From: Selaginella moellendorffii
Lineage: Eukaryota > Plantae > Lycopodiophyta
Length of the DNA stretch: 64,000 bases
NCBI RefSeq assembly: GCF_000143415.4
Contig: NW_003314274.1
Location: forward strand, 2,400,623-2,464,622
Direction of reading: 5' to 3'
Shown here: positions 1-13,923 of the stretch, in pieces
How positions within the stretch are numbered: position 1 is the first letter of the stretch
Layout of the letters: each line of letters opens with the position of its first letter
Made by a program: the position numbers and the translations under genes
Notes under the pieces: generated by a model
The model's input: only the letters and a program-made list of their open reading frames with translations
Databases searched by the model: none
Told to the model about the DNA's origin: nothing

Positions 1-450
1 TAAACTATCTAGTTCAAAAATATTTACTTTAATTTTGTGACAACAGCACAAGAATCAATGAAAAAGTTTTATATTATTTAATTATTTAATTTTATTTTGT
101 AAACTATATAATAATGAAAAAGAAAAATGATTTAATAGATCATATAATTTTTGGAAACTCTTTTAGGAATTGTCATTTTCAACAATCAAAATGAGGTGTT
201 ATTTCATATCAATCTTAATATTTTTAGATTATTTTTACCTTGAGAGCATACAACCTCTTGACAATACTCATCCCTAATGATGCCAAACTATTAATTAAAT
301 ATAAATTTTAATGACATAGACATAGAGAATAAAATTTATTTAATTTATTTCTTCTAAATTATTTAGTACAACTAAAAGCACTAATCTCTCCAATCTTAAT
401 TTATAACTTTACTTTTTTTCTTTTTGTAAAACTATATAATTTTGAAATGC
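1..450. other. AT-rich, CpG-depleted non-coding tract (probable eroded repeat or gene relic)
   Basis: Strongly A/T-biased, essentially no CG dinucleotides. Short segments recur in degraded form (tgtaaactatataat ~98-112 vs ~425-440; tgccaaactatt ~281-292 vs ~448-459). Confidence 0.6.
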
Positions 451-454
451 CAAA

Positions 455-1369
455 CTATTTAAAAGTACCACTTAACTTTGAGAAACTTTCAAAGGGATTC
501 TCATCTTCAACTGGTCCAGAATCAAAACGAAGCACATTATTCCAAGCGACCCACAACCTCTCCACAATATATGCTGATATATCTTCTATGCCTGATGGTA
601 ATGGTATAAATGAGCAATTCTTATGCATCTGCTGCTTCTGGCACCCAACTAAACTTCCAATCTTTCCCTCATCTAATGCAAGCCACAGATTGATGCTAAA
701 TGGCACACAAGGTGCCAAGCTTTCCAAGAGCCACACGCACACCACCTCTGCCACCCTTGCGTTGCCGTCTTTGAATGGCCTGTGGCCGAAAAACCACAAC
801 AAAGTCTCTGCAGCGATTGTTATCAGGCGCTGGGCACGCTGCTGCCAACTGAGGCTCGGATCATTCTCCAAAGCTCCCACCTTGGTGTGGAGCTCATCAA
901 TATACTTGCCCAAGGCATCACTATCAGCTTCCGCTTCTTCACCACCACCGTGATTCATCATCACAAGCTTGTGCACCTTGACAACATCCTCCAGGCTGAT
1001 GATGTCTCCCTTTTCTTGCCTCGTATCCATGTAATCTGCAGCAGCAACCAGGCCGGCAGGGATGGCACGGGGAACTTCCCTGGGGTCGTAATTTAATCGT
1101 AGCATCCTGGCCCTGGTGGCGCCTGGCTCCAGCGTGAAGGCTCGCGGAGCCACACACAGGTCTAAGAATTCCAAGAGCTGCATCTGCTTTCCAAGGTTAG
1201 GCTCAGGGACCTCCGACAGCTTGGGATGCACGGCCTCGATCTGTTGCAAGAGTTTGGAGGTGCCTACCTCTGGAACATACGCCCACGCTCTTTTGCATCC
1301 CCGCCGATGCCATCCAGGCAGCTCTGTCGCCCACTCCATAAGATGTTCTAGGGATCCAACCCTATACAA
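455..1369 (-). CDS. Fic/DOC (fido) domain protein, variant motif (Fic-1)
   Basis: 304-aa ORF with 'ISLEDVVKVHKLVM' (Fic N-terminal helix) and 'GHRPFKDGNARVA', a variant of HPFxDGNGRxxR. The 5' end is uncertain: a possible acceptor (ttgtatag) lies near 1362, or the ATG at ~1339 is used. Confidence 0.75.
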   Translation of the reverse strand: MYRVGSLEHLMEWATELPGWHRRGCKRAWAYVPEVGTSKLLQQIEAVHPKLSEVPEPNLGKQMQLLEFLDLCVAPRAFTLEPGATRARMLRLNYDPREVPRAIPAGLVAAADYMDTRQEKGDIISLEDVVKVHKLVMMNHGGGEEAEADSDALGKYIDELHTKVGALENDPSLSWQQRAQRLITIAAETLLWFFGHRPFKDGNARVAEVVCVWLLESLAPCVPFSINLWLALDEGKIGSLVGCQKQQMHKNCSFIPLPSGIEDISAYIVERLWVAWNNVLRFDSGPVEDENPFESFSKLSGTFK

Positions 1370-1726
1370 GTAAGGGCAATCGCAGCATCTTCAAAGGTGC
1401 TCGTGGAAAGATTCGCGCAAAATCCGACGGCTGGGATTAGCTTGCGATCTTAGCCGTCCAATTTAGGGCGTTTTGTCTTTTCAGCTTTCAGAATCTCTGG
1501 ATTGCATCTTTCTTCTTCTTGAGCTTTCGATCCATCGCTTCTTTCCGCATCTTTGGTTTGTGTGTTCGTTTCTCGTTTCCTTGCTTTGTTGGTTTTTATG
1601 CAGTATCAAGCTGTGGTTCCCAGTGGCTGATGATCGGGCAAGTTGCGGGAGGTGGGAAGCCTGATTGCTGGTAAAAAGGATAGTCCTTTTAGTGTAATAT
1701 AATCTAAGGACCCCCAAATATTTTAA

Positions 1727-2460
1727 TTGTTCACTGCTTCTTCTAAGGGTTTATATGGTGACTCCCTATCGACTACTTTGAGCTTCAAGTGGATCCGCCT
1801 GAAGAGAATTGTGGCCTTTGTTATTGAGATGCCAGATCTTGGCATGCCAAGCAGAATCGATGGTCAATTCCTTTGCTCTAAGTCCTGCACAGCTTCTCTG
1901 GCTTGGAAGCAGGAAGGGACTCGCAGCGTGGGAATCCGAGCCCAAAAAAATGCTGGTATACTTTAGAACATTATCGTTTCCAGCGAGTTGCTCAATAATT
2001 GCACAAGCGACAATCACACGAAAACATTTCGACATTCCCACAGTCACCTGAATGCTCTGGGCAGTTTTCCATTTGCATCGCCGATGCAACACAAAATGAG
2101 GTACCTAACACGTAAAAGTTTATAGAACTCGTCAAGGATAATAACACTTGCATTCGTTGGACAAATCCTCGTTGAGTTACAACGTTGACTGTGAAACAAT
2201 GCAGAAGAAAGCAGACGCTTACACTTTTCAAGGCCTAATCCTTTGGTAAAGGACGTTGCAATCAACCTTGCATCGACCTGGAGGAACTCACCTAGCATTA
2301 AGCAACGTTTCTGAGCTCCACCGTAAACACTCGCGGAGACGCACACAGGTCTAGGAATTCCGAGAGCTGCACTTACCTCCAACACCTTGGGAGCACGGCC
2401 TCGATCTGTTGCAAAAGTTTGGCTGTGGAACACCATCAATGCCACCATAAGATGTCCATA
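1727..2460 (-). pseudogene. Degenerate paralogue of Fic-1
   Basis: 2341-2422 is recognisably similar at DNA level to 1150-1257 (cacacaggtcta.gaattcc.agagctgca ... gcacggcctcgatctgttgcaa.agtttgg). The fragment 'VGMSKCFRVIVACAIIEQLA' lines up with Fic-1 'DGNARVAEVVCVWLLESLA'. The reading frame is broken into several pieces. Confidence 0.65.
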
Positions 2461-2603
2461 TAAAAAAATCCACTGCTACCTGGTTAAAGAAATGACACTT
2501 ACATGCTACTGTGTCTCAGCAAGCTAAAGTACGACTACTCTAAGGTGAGTGTGATCCAAGCTTATGGATGATCTTGATGCTGCAGGTCCTTGGTCAAGGT
2601 GTG

Positions 2604-3579
2604 CTATTGCTGGCAGAATCCACTAGTCACCTGAAGAACAGTTGGAATCCATTCACCATAACAATTCACTACTAACCTGCTCATAGAACTTATCCAGCAT
2701 GAATGTTGCCACTTCATACGGTGGAGTCCTCCTCACTTGACTCTTTTGCAATAACCAGCCGAAAAACAGGCCGCTGAAAAAACAAATGGATGAATACCAA
2801 GTTGAATATTGAGATAATATATTACCTTGGTATGGTGAAGTGAATACCGAGAGCATGGAACATAATGCCTGCCATCATCACGCGAGACACTCTCCCATTT
2901 CCATCAACAAAAGGATGAATCTCAAGAAACTCCTTTGCTACAGCAGCAGCAAGCTTGATAGCAGCAGAAACTCTTAGTTCCGGGGAAGAAGCCTTCAACT
3001 CCTTCAAAAAAAGAAACAAAGAATAAAAAGACCAAACAAACTAAAATGAAAACAAAGTATGCTCTTACCAGGTTCAAGGTGTTGAGAGCATAGTTGAAGG
3101 AGTCCACAAATGATGCCATTCTTTGCCGCACCAAACTTGGATGAAGATAGGGGAGTTGTTCCTTCTTCCGGAGTTGACCTTGAGAGAGTTCCAGTTTAAT
3201 GGTATAAACCATCTGTGTGCGGTATTCTCCACGCTCTCCATCCATGTCCAAGTCTGTCACGTTCAACGCTCTGTGAATCTCCGCTATATCATTCTCCGTT
3301 ATTCTGCCTCTGAGGAGTGCCTCCTCGAATGCCGTCTTGGATGCGAATTTGTCACGCCCAATACAACCTGCTAGCACAGCTACCATCTGCTCGCTTGTTT
3401 TCTCTTGGTTGATCGGGAACTTGATATCATTCATCTCTGCAACCACATTTCTCCACCATGGTTCATTCTCCATGCTGAAGTCGACATTCATCTAAATCAC
3501 ACAGGATAGAGATGAGAAAGCTCGTAGGAAAGCAAGAAAAAGGGACTACCAGGATTACCTTATCGCAGCACTTAGACAT
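2604..3579 (-). CDS. Spliced Fic-domain protein with canonical AMPylase motif (Fic-2)
   Basis: Exons joined by GT-AG introns (~3492-3558, ~3002-3069, ~2775-2825, ~2631-2676) give ...ITENDIAEIHRAL...ERGEYRTQMV...PYLHPSLVRQRMASFVD...EFLEIHPFVDGNGRVSRVMM... The start is uncertain (ATG 3579, or an upstream exon from ~3742). Confidence 0.8.
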
Positions 3580-5211
3580 CGTGGATTCCTCACTTGGCCA
3601 ACTCTGTAGCAGCCACCATCGATAGTAAAATTGGCATCATCAAGAAGAAACTCGGGCGCTCAAACTCCGTAGCTCTCAAAGGGAAGGAAAGGCGAAAAGG
3701 GACTACATACCTTGTCACGCGCTTAGACGGCAATTCTCTCATAGACTCGCTCGATCCTGCGAGCCGCGGCGGCCGCTGTGCTAAATGCTCACCGATGAAG
3801 CCCTAGCGCGCTCCCCAGCGCTCCCAGCAAACTCCCCCCAAGCTATATATTCAAACTCCATGAAGCCCTTTCAACGGCTCACAATGAGCCACGTGTACTC
3901 CGGCATCTGGGCATCGGAGATCTGGCGCAAGGAGAAATACCCATTCTGGGCATATGCTGCTATACCTTGCAATCCAGCTGCTGGATTCGGCTCGAAGCAT
4001 CAGGTGATCGGCCCAGCGTCTCCGCCAGATGCTCTTCGAGCGCCCCTTCCTCGACCGGGAATGTCTCCAGCTAGGAACTTGGACGCGAGGGCCCTCTCGC
4101 CATGCACAACCCGCCATCTCCCCGCCTTGCCATGGAACAGTGACGACCATCGCAAAAAAGCAGCGAGTTCGTCTGTGCTCCAAACGCGATAGCCTGAACT
4201 GCGCAAACGAAGCACTTGGCCTTCCTCGTGCTAGCCAGTGTCCCGCTGGGATTCCTGCCGCAACCCCTGCCGAGCATAGCAGCCAATGTGGAATGATGAA
4301 AGCGTGGCCCATATAACATGGTTACAAAATTAAAGCAACATAAAGAAGTCACAAAAAAAGAAGTTAGTATAATTGCTTTACATTATAAAAACAAAAAAAA
4401 AAACTGCATTTAGCCATAAAAATTAAATAATAAATAAAAATCAGGAAAAAAAAAAACACAGAAGAAAAGGAAGCAAATACCTTGGGTCACTCTTTACATG
4501 GTGTTAAATTTAGTTTCTTGAAGATCTATCAAGCATTTAAACCACAAATTTTTTGTCTACTTCTTATATATGAAGACACTGAAGACACTGACTAATGCAC
4601 TATTTTATATATGCAGTTATCTTACAAGATTAGTTGAGTAAATTAATTAGGTAAGTATTACAAAAGATGGCAAATAAGTAGACAGGTATCATTTAAAGTT
4701 AAATGTCTTAAAAGGATTTTAATCTACCTAAGAACACATGATATATATGTGTATATTACTAATTGAATGCAATATATTTATAAGTTTATTAGTTACAACT
4801 CCCATAAGCTCGTGATATAACTCTTTTGCTTGCAATCTAGGATTTTGTTTACAGAGGATTGGGTAATGTTCTTTGCTTGAACTTGGGACTTAATATTATG
4901 TTTTTATTCATTATAATATTTCCAGACTATATTTATTTATAGTAATTGTTATTCATAATAATAATTTTTGAATCAGGTAAGTTTACATTAAAATATTTAT
5001 ATTATCTGTAATTATTCTTATTAATTATTTTTACTTAGTATACTTAAGATCTTAGTTCCCATTAATAAACTATTTGTTTGAATAGTAATATATTTATGTT
5101 CTAAAAAACTTAAAACATAATGAGAGGGATAAAGTAGGATTACCAAGTTATAAATACAGGTTGATTACCCTAGCCATATTTGTATATTTTATATATACAA
5201 TATAAAGACAT

Positions 5212-5385
5212 TGTGAGTGCATGGAATATGGAAAGGAAATACAGAAATGTGCATATCAATTAACCCCAAAACCCTAGCTTATATACAGGAGCGAGTGGTC
5301 CGGATTGAAACCAATCCGACGGCTACCAAAATCCACTACGCTAATATTAGTATACGGCATCGTAGCCGTACACTTGGCCCTCACA
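5212..5385 (-). repeat. 3' LTR (174 bp, TGTGAG...CTCACA)
   Basis: Identical to 10048-10220 except one extra C near the end; 6-bp terminal inverted repeats. Confidence 0.97.
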
Positions 5386-5400
5386 TCATCCCCTCCTCTC
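5386..5400 (-). other. Polypurine tract
   Basis: Minus strand GAGAGGAGGGGATGA directly abuts the 3' LTR. Confidence 0.85.
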
Positions 5401-5417
5401 GGAATAATGGAAGGCCG

Positions 5418-8400
5418 TCAGGGTTCTCTTGTAGATGGGCCGGGATCTGGAGGAACGTCAGGAGGAGGCATCAGTGGATCTGTAGACGGTATTAACTGCT
5501 CCTGATCCCTCTGTATGAAGCGTTTTAACCGCTGCACATGCACAATCTCCGGAGGATCAGCCTGCTGAACGTCATGCCGAACCTCATAAACTTGTGGTCC
5601 AACTTGCCGCAACACCCGATACGGTCCTTTCCACTGCACAAGGAGCCCCTTAGATAAACCACATACCGTAAGATGGGGAAAACGGACTAACACCAAATCA
5701 TCCACTTTGTACTCCACTGGTGGACGATGATGGGAATTGTAGCGCCGTTGTTGTCCCACTTGTACGCGGCCTAAGTGTTCAGCAGACTCTGCTCGGACAA
5801 GTAGAAGAATGCTTGTCAAATATTGATCCCATGACCTAGCATCAGGAGCTCGTGGCAATCGCGAAGGTAAACCTAGCTCTGTTGGTAATATTGGATCATG
5901 ACCATATAGAAGTTTATATGGTGAAGCACCAACAGAACTCTGCACCCCTGTGACATAAGCATACCGAAGAAACGGCAAATAACCATCCCAATCCGAATGT
6001 TGAAAGTTCACATACTTCGCAATCATCCCTTTGAATGTCCGAACGAGCCGTTCCACCAGACCGTCTGATTGTGGATGATAAGCACTCGTAAAAGTGTGGC
6101 GTATCCCCAACCGAGATGTCAAAACATGAAATACCTCAGCCATAAATGCAGGACCATTATCCGAAAGAATCCGTTCTGGACAAGAATGCTGGAACACCAC
6201 TCGATTGAGGAGGAAGTATCCAACAGCAGTTGCAGAGGCACTAGCAAGAGCACCAACTTCCACCCAACGAGTCAAGTAGTCAGAAGCAATAATAACATAC
6301 TCATTGCCAGCAGTCGATCGCGGAAAAGGTCCCATAAGATCAAACGCCACCAACTCAAACGGACGAGAAACTGCAATTGACTCCAACCGTCCTTCCGCAA
6401 CACAAGGGGGAGTATTACGAGCTTGGCACCAAACGCAGCTACGCACATACCGGATAATATCACGTCGCATCTCTGGCCAATAGAAAGATCTGCGCAACTT
6501 CTCGGTGACACGACGGTGTCCCATATGCCCACCTAGAATAGGAGAATCATGGTAGGCATGGAGAAACCGCGGAATAAACACCGAAGGCACCACCAGCCGT
6601 AAATGAGCATCAGGATCCGTCCCCACAAAATAAACAAGGCCATCTTCAAGGCGATATTGAGAATGTAAATGCCGAAAAGGCAAGTCATCAGCAAGTGATG
6701 CAGGATTCTCAAACCCATCTCGAAGCCTTCGAATCCACGGCTCAATCTTTTGAGCCTCGCGAACCTCATCCAGAGAAGGTAGATCTTGCTCTACGCCCTG
6801 TGGACACTGAACGTCAAGGACAGCAACCGCCGACGGCACAGAATCCTCATCTAGAAAATCCACAGATGCTGGAACAACAGGTTCATCAGAAACATGAGAA
6901 GTGAGTGGAGAAGGAAGAGGAGCTCGAGAAAGGGCATCAGCATCAGCCATAGAACTCTCTGGGCGATGAACAACATCGAAATCATATATCTGAAGCTTCA
7001 AAGCCCATCGAGCCATACGACCAACCAGGTTCTTCCGCTTCAATAATGAAGTAACAGCAGCATGGTCACCTTCAAGTAACGTCCGAGAACCATGTAGATA
7101 GGCATGAAGTTTCTCGAAACCCCAGACTGCTGCTAAACACTCCTTCTCCGTCGTGGAGTAGTTCATCTCCGCTGGTTGTAATGTACGGCTTATGTATGCA
7201 ATGGGATGGCGCTGACCAGGCACACTCGAGCTCTCTTGCATCAACACACCTCCAAGACCAATGTCAGAAGCATCCACGCGCAAAATAAAAGGTCGAGTGT
7301 AGTCAAGATATGCCAAAACCGGAGGAGTTGTCAATAGCTCTTTGAGATTCACGAACGCCCGCTCACAATCGGGAGACCAGATGAAAGATGACGTTGATGA
7401 CTTCAGCAACGCTCGCAATGGTAAAGTGCGATCGGAAAAATGATCCACAAAACGACCGAGATACTGCACCTTACCCAAAAAGCGCTGCACATCATTCACA
7501 CACTTCGGAGTAGGGAACTTTAGAACAGCCACAAGTTTGTCAGGATCAACTTGCAAACCCTCACGAGAAATACGGTACCCAAGATAAGTTGTGTCCTTGG
7601 ACCCAAACACGCACTTCGACCGCTTCAGCTTTAAACCAACGTCGCGTAGCCGATCCAACACTTTACAAACATCACGAACATGCTCCTCCCACGTCCCCTC
7701 CGAGTGGATCAAGACATCATCAATGAAGTCGGCCGTCACCTCTGGCATATCGCAAAGAACCTCGTCCATCATGCGCTGAAAAGTTGCTGGAGCATTGTTC
7801 AAACCAAACGGCATCACCAAAAACTCGTACAAACCAAATGGTGTACAAAAAGCAGTCTTAGGAATATCGTCTTCAGCCATCGGTACTTGCCAATACCCAG
7901 AAGCAAGATCTAGCTTGGTGAACCAACGACTTCGCCCCAGATGATCCAAGAGATCAGCAGTGTGAGGAAGAGGGTACACGTCCGGGATCGTCACTTCATT
8001 TAACGGACGATAGTCGATGCAGAAACGAATACTCCCATCAGGCTTTGTCACAAGATGAGGTTCACATGCCCAAGGACTCCGCGACTTCCGAATAACACCC
8101 TTCTCCAACATCTCCTTGACGTTTGCACGTAAAATCTTGATCTCCTTGGGTGACCGACGACGAACAGGAACCTTGATTGGACGAGCATCCCCGGTTGGAA
8201 TGGGATGACGTGTGGCAATCTTGGCCCCAGACGATAGGTCAAATTCAAAGAGATCAGAATACTCCTTCATGAGCTGATCAACAGCTGCAACACAAAGATC
8301 ATCGGAGGGATCGAAAAAGGGAAGAGCAGAACAAGATGGAAACACAAGAGGAAATAATGGGGGAACAAAAGTAATGGAAGCAGAGGTAGAAGTAGAGGGA

Positions 8401-8906
8401 CGAAGAGGTACAGAAGTGAGAGGAATGGATGAAACATAAGGAAGTATGAGACAAGGGGGAAAAGCCTCAAAGTCACACTTGGCATGATTGTGCTGCAACC
8501 AATCCATACCAAGAATGAGGTCAAAAGCTTGACTCGGCACCACCTGCAACGACTGCAACTCAAGCTCGAGATCGCCCACACGCACAACCAGGTCCGCCTC
8601 ATCTCGTGCACATGCATGTGTACGGCCGTTGCCATAAAGAATGAAAACTGGATCCGCCGCACGACGCAAGTGTAGACGACAACGTGTGGCAACAGGTCGA
8701 GCAATAGAAGATAAACTCGAACCTGTATCAACCAACACGGAGAGAAGAATAGGAGACCTCTTGTTATAAAAACGAGCTTGGAAAGTAAACACTGGATGAA
8801 CCGGTGCCGAGTGAACCCCTTGATGATACTCCCGAAAGAAAAATGGAGGGATCACTAACTTATTCGCGCAAGGTCCCTCCATTACTCGCGCGACTCCTCG
8901 TTTCCC
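5418..8906 (-). CDS. pol: Pol polyprotein (protease, RT, RNase H, integrase), -1 frame relative to gag
   Basis: VLVDTGSS (protease); KLDLASGYWQV, MPFGL, FIDD (RT); VDASDIGLGGVL (RNase H); HDSPILGGH...CVWC, DDE core and WKGPY (integrase). Uninterrupted frame; no chromodomain seen. Confidence 0.95.
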   Translation of the reverse strand, partial: GKRGVARVMEGPCANKLVIPPFFFREYHQGVHSAPVHPVFTFQARFYNKRSPILLSVLVDTGSSLSSIARPVATRCRLHLRRAADPVFILYGNGRTHACARDEADLVVRVGDLELELQSLQVVPSQAFDLILGMDWLQHNHAKCDFEAFPPCLILPYVSSIPLTSVPLRPSTSTSASITFVPPLFPLVFPSCSALPFFDPSDDLCVAAVDQLMKEYSDLFEFDLSSGAKIATRHPIPTGDARPIKVPVRRRSPKEIKILRANVKEMLEKGVIRKSRSPWACEPHLVTKPDGSIRFCIDYRPLNEVTIPDVYPLPHTADLLDHLGRSRWFTKLDLASGYWQVPMAEDDIPKTAFCTPFGLYEFLVMPFGLNNAPATFQRMMDEVLCDMPEVTADFIDDVLIHSEGTWEEHVRDVCKVLDRLRDVGLKLKRSKCVFGSKDTTYLGYRISREGLQVDPDKLVAVLKFPTPKCVNDVQRFLGKVQYLGRFVDHFSDRTLPLRALLKSSTSSFIWSPDCERAFVNLKELLTTPPVLAYLDYTRPFILRVDASDIGLGGVLMQESSSVPGQRHPIAYISRTLQPAEMNYSTTEKECLAAVWGFEKLHAYLHGSRTLLEGDHAAVTSLLKRKNLVGRMARWALKLQIYDFDVVHRPESSMADADALSRAPLPSPLTSHVSDEPVVPASVDFLDEDSVPSAVAVLDVQCPQGVEQDLPSLDEVREAQKIEPWIRRLRDGFENPASLADDLPFRHLHSQYRLEDGLVYFVGTDPDAHLRLVVPSVFIPRFLHAYHDSPILGGHMGHRRVTEKLRRSFYWPEMRRDIIRYVRSCVWCQARNTPPCVAEGRLESIAVSRPFELVAFDLMGPFPRSTAGNEYVIIASDYLTRWVEVGALASASATAVGYFLLNRVVFQHSCPERILSDNGPAFMAEVFHVLTSRLGIRHTFTSAYHPQSDGLVERLVRTFKGMIAKYVNFQHSDWDGYLPFLRYAYVTGVQSSVGASPYKLLYGHDPILPTELGLPSRLPRAPDARSWDQYLTSILLLVRAESAEHLGRVQVGQQRRYNSHHRPPVEYKVDDLVLVRFPHLTVCGLSKGLLVQWKGPYRVLRQVGPQVYEVRHDVQQADPPEIVHVQRLKRFIQRDQEQLIPSTDPLMPPPDVPPDPGPSTREP
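8842..8906 (-). promoter_or_regulatory. -1 programmed ribosomal frameshift signal: G GGA AAC plus H-type pseudoknot
   Basis: Slippery heptamer at 8900-8906 in the gag frame, 6-nt spacer, stem 1 (8885-8893 with 8864-8872, 9 bp including one GU), stem 2 (8874-8883 with 8842-8851, 10 bp). Confidence 0.88.
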
Positions 8907-8995
8907 GAATGCACCTCGGTATCCAAACCTTCCACCGCAGCAGCACCAACGGGACGTTGCTGACGCCAAGGTCTCCACCCAGGAAATGGAGGTCG

Positions 8996-9814
8996 CTAAT
9001 CCGGAAAGCGCCGACAACGCCGATAAGTATGACCAACTTCATCACACGCCCAGCAACGAATGTCACGGCCACGACCACGTCCTCGCCCTTGTCCTTGGAC
9101 TCGAGTAGCAGCAGCATCAACCTCCATGGGAACAGGACCATCACTCATAGGAAGTGGAGCTGAAGGACGTGTAGCAAGAAGTGGAAGAGGCGACGTCTCA
9201 TAACGTTGTGCCAAGCGAAGAGCATCGTCAAGAGTGGCAGGAGCAAGTCCATGCACAAGTCCGACAAGATCTTGACGAAGTGCTGGCCACAGCATTCCTA
9301 GCTTGATCCGCTCCGACATATTTGGCTCCGCACGAAGCAAAAGACTTCGGAAACGAACGCCAAATTGCATCACCGACTCAGATGGCCCTTGGCGAAGACG
9401 ATGCAATTGTTGGAAGGCATCATCACAATCGTCGGCGTGTCCGAAGGCGCGTTTGAAGACGTCCGGAAGAACACTCCAATCGCCACGAGTAGCTGCGCTC
9501 AATCCATTGTACCACTGCAATGCTGTCCCTTGAAGACATGTGGGGAACTCACGCAAACGCCGAGCATCATCCCAAGAATGATATGTGGCAATCACCGTGA
9601 AGTGATCGAACCAATGGTACACATCATCCCCAGGATTCCCACGAAAGAACTCCGGCCGAACGCGAGGATTGGCACCAAAAGCAGGAGGAGTTGTACCATG
9701 TGCCGTGAACGCCGCCATCAACTGAGTTTGGTTGTTCAATTGCAGGCGCATAGCATCAAGCAATTGAACCAACTGCTGCTCTAGAGTCAAAGGAGGAGAT
9801 TGCGGATCGGCCAT
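8996..9814 (-). CDS. gag: Gag (capsid plus CCHC nucleocapsid), interrupted by TAG at 8996-8998
   Basis: RPEFFRG...WFDHF...WDD...LQGTALQWY...LRQGPSESV (retrotransposon gag), CWACDEVGHTYRRC knuckle. The frame continues past the TAG for 37 more codons to a TAA at 8882-8884. Confidence 0.92.
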   Translation of the reverse strand: MADPQSPPLTLEQQLVQLLDAMRLQLNNQTQLMAAFTAHGTTPPAFGANPRVRPEFFRGNPGDDVYHWFDHFTVIATYHSWDDARRLREFPTCLQGTALQWYNGLSAATRGDWSVLPDVFKRAFGHADDCDDAFQQLHRLRQGPSESVMQFGVRFRSLLLRAEPNMSERIKLGMLWPALRQDLVGLVHGLAPATLDDALRLAQRYETSPLPLLATRPSAPLPMSDGPVPMEVDAAATRVQGQGRGRGRGRDIRCWACDEVGHTYRRCRRFPD

Positions 9815-11780: not shown

Positions 11781-13923
11781 CTAGGTCATGACCGGGCCAT
11801 TTCTCTTGGCAGCTCCCGGGCATGGTTCTCCGACGAGTGGACGAGCCGAGGTACGAGCCTTTTCGTTTCTTGGGTTAGATTTCCACAGGGATTTCCACCT
11901 GTGAGACATGGAACCTTGACGCGAAAGTCTATTTGTATAGATGCTACTCTTGAATTTGCAGGCAGCACAAGAAACAAATTGAAATGAAAACGATTTTTTA
12001 AAATTACCTCTCTTTTCCCAGCAAATGAAGCTGTACACTAATGGATTTGTATCACTGTAAGAGAGGCCTTTAATTCTGTTCAAATTGCAGACTTTCCATA
12101 CACTCCAGATTACGTTTGTGTCCACGAAAATCTTTTCCATACCTCATCCACAGGAAAAGATCGCCAATTCCAGTAACTTGGGCTTTGAGCCCTTGACTGC
12201 CTTCGAGGAGCCGGGCCGATAAAATACATGATTTCTCAACGATAGCATGATTCAGAAGAACAATTGAGCTTCCAATACTTCCTTGTACGCGGCAGTAACT
12301 CTCATCCAAGACATTGATCGGGAGCTCGATATGATTCATCCTGGTTTTCCAAAATCTTTTTACATAAGAAACATACAAAGATTGATCATACCTTGTCAAG
12401 TAGCTCAGCAAAAGTTTGAACCCAGGTTCAACAAGTTTTACTTCATCGTAGCCAAATTCCCAGTCATGAAATGTATGAGGCCTCTCTAAACGAATCAAGG
12501 GAGCTGGTTGGGAGCGAGCTATGGTTATCCTTTCTCCAATCCTCGCAACCTTTATAGTCATTACGTGAAGGACGCTCAAAGCGCACACGCAAATCTCCTC
12601 CACTCTCGGCTCCAAAGACTTGAAATGCTCCACAGCCATTGAGACAGCATTCTGGACCCCAGCGTCGTCGTTGAGCTGAATCGCAAGGAGAACTCTATGC
12701 TCTCCACCCTTGCTAATCATCCAGGGAGAAGCCAATCTTGCAGCGTTTTCAGTGTCTCAGCAGCGGTTCAGTCCGTCATCCAGAGGGAGATTTGAAGAGA
12801 AACAGCTTTCATACCATATACTATGAACTCGCTTCTTTGGCTCGCACGTAGTGAAGCTGATGTTCTCCCATTCAGCTAGCACCAATACATACTTGGCAAG
12901 CTCCACAAACGCTTGCATGTCCGGCTCCAAGAGAGGCAGCTCCATGAAGAACACGTAGTTTTGGCACACCATACCGTAGAAGACTAGAGCATGGAGCTTT
13001 GCATGGTCGGATGTAAGCGGCTCCTCCACGATCGCAGCTTGAGAGATCATAGAACCACTGTGAACGTTATGAGTTTTGCTGAGGGAAATCTCACGTATGA
13101 CGAAGGGATTGGAGCGCAAGTGAAAGCCTCATACAGCAGCCTCAACAACACTGCACTCTCAATCATCTTAAACAGGAACTCAACGTCAGGTTCGCTCTCG
13201 CTCTCACTGATCAACAAGCGACGGACCGTGTCGAAGCACTGATCAAGCGGGAGTAGAAGATGGCCGAGTATGATATTCCAAGCTTCATGACCACGGCTGC
13301 TCAGCTTTCGATTCATCGTCTCCTGCAGAACTCGGTCATCCCAGCCAGCAAGAGCGATCCATTCTGGGGGGTCGTACGTGCAAGCCATCCAGTTATGTGG
13401 TATGTTTTCCATGTTGGAGGACACAATGTTATCGCTCGTGTTGATGGTGAAGCTGGCCGTGTCAAGATCGATGACATAACTGTAGTGGACATAGGTTCTC
13501 CGAGGAGCAAATAGTAACATGAAACTGCACGGGAGAAAGCCGAGCTCAAGGATACGGTACCAGAGCTTTGAAGGTCCAAGGGAGACAAGATCCCAGGGAT
13601 TGCCCCAAGGATTCCCGCCTTGAAGTTCTCTCCGTATCTCCTGTGACCCGGCAGCAGTGCAAACTTGGTCCAGGAATTGGGGTGATGGAAACTCCACGTT
13701 CCCAAACTACAGATGGAAATTTACACACAGCAAGAGGGTGTCAGAGAACTCTCACCTGGAATACCACTGCACGATCAATCAAGAATTTCAAGAGCTGGAC
13801 AGAATGATCCTTCAGAGAGTCGACGATCATTTTACCGAGGACCTCCAAATTGGAGTCCATTTGATTGTAGATGCAGTAGTAGACACCTTTGTAGCGGAAG
13901 CTTATGTAACCGTGGGTGCCCAT
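11781..13923 (-). pseudogene. Fungal-type uncharacterised protein (MGTxGY..RYKG.YY..YN..DS family), probably disrupted
   Basis: Exon 1 13923-13756 (MGTHGYISFRYKGVYYCIYNQMDSNLEVLGK), 49-bp GT-AG intron 13707-13755, exon 2 with YSYVIDLDTASFTI, later LLAIQLNDDAGVQNAV...ALSVLHVMTIKV. Frame change near 13050-13100 and an in-frame TGA at 12757-12759. The 3' end is approximate. Confidence 0.6.

Follow-up and report, generated by a model that had tools for sequence, protein, structure and literature searches.

In a 2025 review (PMC12409994), eukaryotic Fic is said to consist of one metazoan gene, with none in plants or fungi; Fic domains were recorded only in metazoa, a few fungi and sporadic other eukaryotes by the 2009 Fido paper and by a survey of 2015, both of which stressed horizontal transfer. 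The described systems to be compared here are FICD/HYPE, the metazoan class II Fic AMPylase/deAMPylase of BiP (4u04, 6i7g); the bacterial class II proteins SoFic and BT_2513 (3eqx, 3cuc); a double-Fic family of about 575-615 amino acids (aa) from Amoebozoa and a chytrid, represented by Heterostelium (PPL_00220), two Dictyostelium species, Balamuthia and Borealophlyctis; and Doc and AvrB, the former without the flap and the latter without the Fic motif, both of which depart from AMPylation (PMC2686095). We analysed a 64,000-nucleotide (nt) stretch of the vascular plant Selaginella moellendorffii (contig NW_003314274.1, positions 2,400,623 to 2,464,622; hereafter the window), which holds two real Fic-fold genes on its minus strand, gene A (LOC9646299) and gene B (SELMODRAFT_410894). 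Databases list these Selaginella proteins only as uncharacterised and 'Fido domain-containing', and a full-text literature search returned no paper in which Fic domains are connected with Selaginella or with any non-seed plant.

The explanation that we favour, at a probability of about 0.6, is that these are two separate genes, of which A would encode an active nucleoside monophosphate (NMP) transferase and B a non-catalytic Fic-fold protein. The original prediction, made from the DNA letters, had placed three same-strand Fic loci here; two of them stand, and the third shrank to a short fragment in an untranslated region (UTR), without a Fic core. Both genes pass the Pfam Fic (PF02661) gathering cut-off of 24 bits (A at 51.8, B at 28.9), and a six-frame profile scan of the 64-kb window found no Fic locus beyond them. 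Transcription was followed in contigs from four public runs (four studies), aligned to window positions 200-3900.

Gene A: transcript and predicted enzyme

Gene A has six exons and five introns of 46-107 nt, all on the minus strand. Exon 1 (3711-3900), defined by contigs in the four runs, the joint 3603/3711 and analysis of upstream open reading frames (uORFs), is wholly 5' leader. The main start codon (3579-3577, MSKCCDK) lies in exon 2 (3559-3603), which is bounded by joints in all four runs. By tblastn, structure model and profile alignment, exon 3 (3069-3491), an exact match to LOC9646299 (P0004, 247 aa), specifies the N-terminal region of the protein, a core helix containing H80, the G95-x-Y-R98 anchor and the flap hairpin 103-121. 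The canonical Fic motif HPFVDGNGRVSR, at 2917-2882, falls in exon 4 (2826-3001; motif, profile and contigs), and is followed by exon 5 (2677-2773; a joint in all four runs and sequence) and exon 6 (2162-2630; contigs, the joint 2422/2503 and sequence), where the coding sequence ends with its final 8 codons and the stop (2606-2604), followed by a 3' UTR of at least 440 nt, contigs reaching 2162.

This exon structure was first derived from sequence, and every intron was then borne out by spliced contigs: the joints 3603/3711, 3491/3559, 2773/2826 and 2628/2675 were present in all four runs, and 3000/3068 in three of them. Shifted to canonical dinucleotides, the introns are 3604-3710, 3492-3558, 3002-3068, 2774-2825 and 2631-2676, and their CT..AC ends on the plus strand read GT..AG on the minus strand. 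The spliced coding sequence translates to P0004 exactly. A gene with the canonical motif, spread over spliceosomal exons as originally proposed, was therefore confirmed: the minus strand does contain IHPFVDGNGRVSR, whose His codon is at 2917, and each predicted intron has its GT-AG joint. GenBank models the gene with 422 aa, as far as window position 1766, and this model is not supported, since contig depth is zero between 1812 and 2059.

Several features of the transcript lie outside the coding sequence. Upstream ATGs (uATGs) are found in exon 1 at 3861 and 3742, and the latter, where the original prediction had its coordinates end, opens a 26-codon uORF that after splicing overlaps the main start in another frame; because of an in-frame TAA at 3725, gene A has no N-terminal extension. 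Contigs run 350-405 nt past 3900, to about 4250-4305 if they are colinear with the genome, in which case the leader would measure about 585 nt and contain 11 uATGs. About 100 nt past the stop, an optional GT-AG intron (2423-2502) is spliced in one run and unspliced in another. With a long leader, at least two uORFs of which one overlaps the start, and a 3'-UTR intron that would favour decay, the output of gene A may be limited after transcription.

The motif HPFVDGNGRVSR occupies residues 177-188 of the protein and is a complete HxFx(D/E)GNGRxxR. When gene A was aligned with 59 distant relatives, H177, N183 and G184 were invariant and H80, G95, P178, F179, G182, R185 and R188 nearly so, all of them being present in P0004; a profile made without P0004 aligned residues 65-206 at 118.7 bits. 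The AlphaFold2 model (mean predicted local distance difference test, pLDDT, 76.9, and above 90 across the core) contains the Fic helices and the beta-hairpin 103-121, the flap, in which about 10 residues are inserted as compared with the profile. Its best solved-structure matches by Foldseek were FICD and BT_2513 (E = 6e-7 to 6e-6), and its shape matches in the ESM Atlas were all Fic clusters, at template modelling (TM) scores of 0.62-0.67. No TPR or further Pfam domain was found, and the highest 19-residue Kyte-Doolittle mean, 1.37, falls within a core helix. Gene A is thus predicted to be a soluble, stand-alone Fic domain with a class II (FICD/SoFic-like) fold. Given the complete motif, His80, the Gly95-x-x-Arg98 anchor and a flap for docking the target, it would act as an NMP transferase, most likely of adenosine monophosphate (AMP), on a hydroxyl side chain of a protein.

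The absence of an (S/T)xxxE(G/N) auto-inhibitory motif, which had been noted from the sequence, was upheld: a regular-expression search for [ST]xxxE[GN] found none in P0001, P0002 or P0004, and the P0004 row is gapped where relatives carry SNxIE(G/D/E). The string TAFEEA (residues 60-65) was considered as an inhibitory helix and discarded, as it aligns to the first core helix and not to the alpha-inh position.

Gene B and its second locus

Gene B is a single open reading frame (ORF) at 455-1369 on the minus strand, located by profile, tblastn and contigs, with its first ATG at 1339 and its stop at 457-455; at 304 codons, it is 99% identical to SELMODRAFT_410894 (P0001) of Selaginella moellendorffii. 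The gene is intronless, encodes about 294-304 aa and shows no splice joint in any of the four runs. Contigs cover 486-1333, with zero-difference coverage over 677-1333, and the annotated extra 3' exon (about 239-300) has zero contig depth in all four runs. At 549-706, two contig versions differing at 5 positions occur in each of three runs, reflecting either two haplotypes or cross-mapping from a paralogue.

The Fic motif originally reported for this locus, GHRPFKDGNARVA, is present on the minus strand (Arg codon at 781), and the Pfam score of 28.9 bits is in line with those of two paralogous ORFs (30.5 and 26.4 bits), but the motif is not of catalytic grade. In ungapped alignments to gene A and to the double-Fic profile, the degenerate motif RPFKDGNARVAE, at 781-746, has Arg for the catalytic His, Ala for the second Gly (GNG to GNA) and Glu for the last Arg. 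Across the family it reads (H/R)RPFKDGNARV(A/V)E, and the His that precedes the Arg of gene B is itself Arg in a paralogue (GRRPF). The profile alignment skips positions 111-143, where the G-x-x-R anchor and the flap are found, and the predicted model is without strands. Because the catalytic His, the anion-hole Gly and the ATP-binding Arg are replaced by Arg, Ala and Glu, and the flap is deleted, gene B should be unable to act as a Fic enzyme.

The fold assignment comes from several comparisons. With VIA-align, the gene B model matched 3cuc at Z = 13.4 over 189 residues, and 50 of the 50 rows listed were Fic, Doc or AvrB; its ESM Atlas features point to Fic too. A word-indexed homologue search recovered three Selaginella proteins only, and a sequence search of the PDB gave no match. 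Gene B has no TPR or other Pfam domain, and its top 19-residue Kyte-Doolittle mean, 1.68, lies within a core helix, so that Pfam and hydropathy scans agree with the earlier statement that neither protein contains a transmembrane or TPR domain.

A second gene B locus adjoins Nup160 and is found, with the same neighbours, on two scaffolds, GL377636 and GL377616, which represent either two haplotypes or a recent segmental copy. Its ORFs are intact, with 304 codons (6001-6912 of the GL377636.1 stretch) and 301 codons (5382-6284 of the GL377616.1 stretch), but the corresponding public models (P0002 and P0003), namely SELMODRAFT_425030 with 252 aa and SELMODRAFT_421411 with 265 aa and a frameshifted tail, misrepresent them as truncated or frameshifted. 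Only coding sequence is shared between gene B and this locus (90% over 866 nt), and no A-like gene is present there. Nei-Gojobori ratios of nonsynonymous to synonymous substitution rates (dN/dS) for the three gene B pairs were 0.235 (p = 6e-10), 0.249 and 0.306; the second locus is under purifying selection. From the degenerate motif, together with the intact second-locus ORFs and the low dN/dS, we conclude that gene B is a conserved pseudo-enzyme, neither active nor decaying. As it is transcribed and its second locus is under purifying selection, we propose that it may be a non-catalytic binding or regulatory protein.

Relatives, rival readings and genomic setting

A decayed Fic locus had been placed between the two genes, but only the interval 2316-2471 (minus strand) yielded a match. 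This piece of about 110-155 bp resembles the 5' part of gene B, at residues 9-79 of the gene B family (blastn 73% over 132 nt, tblastn 38-52%); it has no Fic core, and gene A contigs show that it is transcribed as gene A 3' UTR. Nor is the idea of a tandem family undergoing birth and death supported, because A and B share 23 residues and lie far apart in a tree, and the third locus is this short UTR fragment. Those 23 were the only residues alignable by BLASTP, and hhalign gave the two proteins a score of 33.5 at a probability of 38%; the genes appear from their sequences to be neighbours rather than recent duplicates, with only the motif stretch in common. In a quick IQ-TREE tree of 82 Fic-domain rows, gene A lies outside the N-domain (support 98) and C-domain (support 99) clades of the double-Fic family, and P0001 and P0002 sit far from it on a separate branch of length 3.4. 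The two proteins were also compared with the double-Fic family by hhalign, in which gene A scored 90.5 with the N domain and 68.7 with the C domain, and gene B 55.3 with the C domain and 41.2 with the N domain. A split double-Fic gene was considered and rejected, since neither protein falls within the N or C clades and the double-Fic homologue search turned up no plant member.

An exhaustive phmmer search with gene A of 1.84 billion representative proteins gave 55 matches at E <= 1e-3, among which P0004 itself stood alone below 1e-10 and the best foreign match reached E = 2e-7. The named matches are amoebozoan (Heterostelium, Balamuthia), fungal (Chaetomium, Cristinia, Orbilia, a chytrid) or metagenomic, and the genomic context of unnamed ones is bacterial (P0013, P0015), giant-virus-like (P0012) or amoebozoan-like (P0007). 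A word-indexed homologue search with the N-terminus matched only itself. In the tree, P0004 has a terminal branch of 1.94 within an unresolved group of unnamed sequences, outside every starred clade. With relatives so weak and mixed, and with this placement, gene A is an orphan, and these results demonstrate no line of vertical descent and no donor; from these comparisons no donor clade can be named (relatives at E >= 2e-7, in mixed taxa), and a horizontal origin of the Fic genes is plausible. A giant-virus origin of gene A found no support, as other weak relatives are plainly bacterial in context and the matches in BFVD were nudivirus, white spot syndrome virus (WSSV) and phage proteins at 15-18% sequence identity. 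Neither gene is in the list of Selaginella genes resembling those of nucleocytoplasmic large DNA viruses (NCLDVs) published by Maumus et al. 2014, where Fic is unmentioned (PMC4083422). As a separate observation, P0012, a canonical Fic gene of 261 aa on a metagenome contig (ENA ERZ1426520), adjoins a gene for a Pox_VLTF3 late transcription factor, a neighbourhood that suggests a giant-virus-encoded Fic.

The original prediction had interpreted the locus as a horizontally acquired and later intronised Fic family, serving as a defence or cell-death toxin system. The outcomes that it had named as fatal to itself were not found: both genes match the Fic profile, both are transcribed, and no vertically inherited streptophyte orthologue was recovered, gene A having been searched exhaustively and gene B by word-indexed search only. 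A toxin of foreign origin would be consistent with the orphan status of gene A and the lack of any plant among its weak relatives, with the missing auto-inhibitory motif and the transcript features that would keep the protein low, with the mostly nonsynonymous variants in RNA contigs, and with the absence of Fic from plants according to the 2025 review. We nonetheless consider it unlikely, given that no donor clade emerged from the tree, that gene A has five short introns of host type and host-like neighbours, and that the genes are missing from the NCLDV-like set. A more elaborate proposal is quite unlikely: it holds that Selaginella has a lineage-specific, fast-evolving repertoire of Fic enzymes and pseudo-enzymes taken from microbes or giant viruses, and that A and B form one unit, in which an uninhibited enzyme, checked by uORFs, mRNA decay and possibly the pseudo-Fic, would be released as an immune or conflict effector to AMPylate host or pathogen proteins.

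By analogy with Fic toxin-antitoxin modules, and with the two domains of amoebozoan double-Fic proteins, pseudo-Fic B might bind, restrain or target active Fic A. The genes share a strand, with A upstream of B and their ORFs about 1.2 kb apart; they are transcribed in the same four runs; their hhalign preferences for the N and C domains are reciprocal; and A has no inhibitory motif of its own. We regard such a partnership as very unlikely, because the tree separates A from both double-Fic clades and puts B elsewhere on its long branch, the second gene B locus has no A-like neighbour and shares coding sequence alone with the first, no [ST]xxxE[GN] motif is present in gene B that could be supplied to A, and no contig in the four runs joins the two genes. 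That one or both genes are functionless transcribed relics, whether young pseudogenes or neutrally drifting inserts, we judge to be highly improbable. Gene A does lack close relatives, its variants are near the neutral ratio, its transcript has features typical of triggers of nonsense-mediated decay, and public models disagree (247 or 422 aa for gene A, with P0002 and P0003 truncated); against this, gene A has retained an ORF of 247 codons, with all the invariant Fic residues, over five introns that are spliced correctly, and at each of its three places the gene B ORF is intact (294-304 codons; dN/dS 0.24-0.31).

The interpretation of A as an active enzyme and B as a non-catalytic protein accounts best for the data, and several points weigh against it. 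The RNA nature of the four runs is established by the spliced joints themselves and is otherwise guessed, and the contigs are uninformative on strand, transcript ends and expression levels. Residues 1-64 of gene A have pLDDT below 60 and cannot be aligned by profile, and may include an inhibitory element of a non-canonical type (SMENEP, residues 13-18, for example). The gene A variants in RNA contigs, 7 nonsynonymous and 3 synonymous, are near the neutral expectation; with no paralogue or orthologue to set beside these near-neutral variants, constraint on gene A cannot be demonstrated. For gene B, one run gave 11 nonsynonymous and 2 synonymous variants, some perhaps from the paralogue. These numbers are small, and the variants establish neither relaxed nor diversifying selection for either gene.

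The window is ordinary plant nuclear DNA of Selaginella moellendorffii. The locus sits on the 2.86-Mb scaffold GL377578.1, and neighbouring ORFs are plant genes (a C2H2 zinc finger, a NIF-type phosphatase, a Vps51/COG1-like and a TORTIFOLIA1-like gene); the introns, these neighbours and the size of the scaffold exclude contamination as the source of the DNA. The minus strand also carries a Ty3/gypsy retrotransposon, possibly a young one, at 5418-9814. Its pol ORF of 1199 aa is uninterrupted, a gag ORF of 272 aa (Retrotrans_gag) adjoins it, and the distance to the first confirmed exon of gene A, downstream, is 1.7 kb. At 12070-13697 (minus strand) are two ORFs, of 221 and 216 aa, that belong to no Pfam family. 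The piece at 1564-1687 (also 1440-1563) reached a contig depth of 6099 in one run and 658 in another, with zero in the other two, and the loose ends of its contigs run into unrelated sequence; on the plus strand, 1612-1677 is exon-like, preceded by a pyrimidine tract and cag and followed by gtaaaa. The interval 1540-1700 showed no Rfam match, no unusual RNA fold and no repeat within the window, and the high-depth piece may be a partial copy of a highly expressed gene located elsewhere.

Comparison with known Fic systems

Reviews state that plants have no Fic, yet in this vascular plant a Fic gene whose motif is flawless is transcribed and correctly spliced, and a conserved Fic pseudo-enzyme is kept beside it. 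Activity of gene A, if it exists, would add Fic-type AMPylation to the post-translational modifications of plants and make the protein a rare natural Fic without the canonical auto-inhibitory helix. The novelty is bounded in that gene A is an orphan of Selaginella alone and its fold and chemistry are those of a well-known superfamily.

Among solved structures, FICD/HYPE is the best match of gene A (Foldseek E = 6e-7). The motif (HPFxDGNGRxxR), the flap and the helical core are common to both, phmmer aligning them at E = 3e-4 over the motif helix, and the gene B model aligns to FICD/HYPE at Z = 12-13. The Selaginella proteins differ in having no transmembrane helix, no TPR repeats and no TxxxEG helix, and identity is about 20%; nothing indicates that either gene is orthologous to FICD/HYPE. 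The bacterial class II proteins SoFic and BT_2513 likewise have the core fold in common with both Selaginella proteins, and the PADLOC model for SoFic matches gene A residues 61-197 at 39.5 bits. The shape matches of gene A in the ESM Atlas are mostly to families of this kind that combine Fic with a winged helix, whereas the Selaginella proteins are without the C-terminal winged helix and the N-terminal SxxxEG helix, and fall well short of the cut-offs of the NCBIfam equivalog models (17 bits, with 550 required).

Over the whole sequence, the best match of gene A is the double-Fic family, to whose N domain it aligns by hhalign at E = 1e-12, with gene B aligning to the C domain at 2e-6 to 2e-7. 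Members of this family differ from the Selaginella proteins in carrying two canonical or near-canonical Fic domains on one polypeptide, and A and B nest in neither domain clade. We also observed that the two domains of the family (P0005, P0007, P0014, P0026, P0035, P0041, P0068, P0069) are homologous to each other (hhalign score 264) and that in its N-terminal part the place of SxxxEG is taken by an SNxIE(D/E) helix.

Doc and AvrB are comparable in one respect, as gene B would, like them, depart from AMPylation. In alignments to its model, Doc scored Z = 9.2 and AvrB Z = 8.9. The catalytic His and GNKR are retained in Doc, but the corresponding parts of gene B are Arg and GNAR. The predicted structure of gene B appears to lie nearer to the class II Fic proteins, for which Z was 13, than to either of these two. 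Set beside these systems, the locus adds a plant member, hitherto undescribed, to a well-known superfamily, and its combination of enzyme and pseudo-enzyme as neighbours is unusual.

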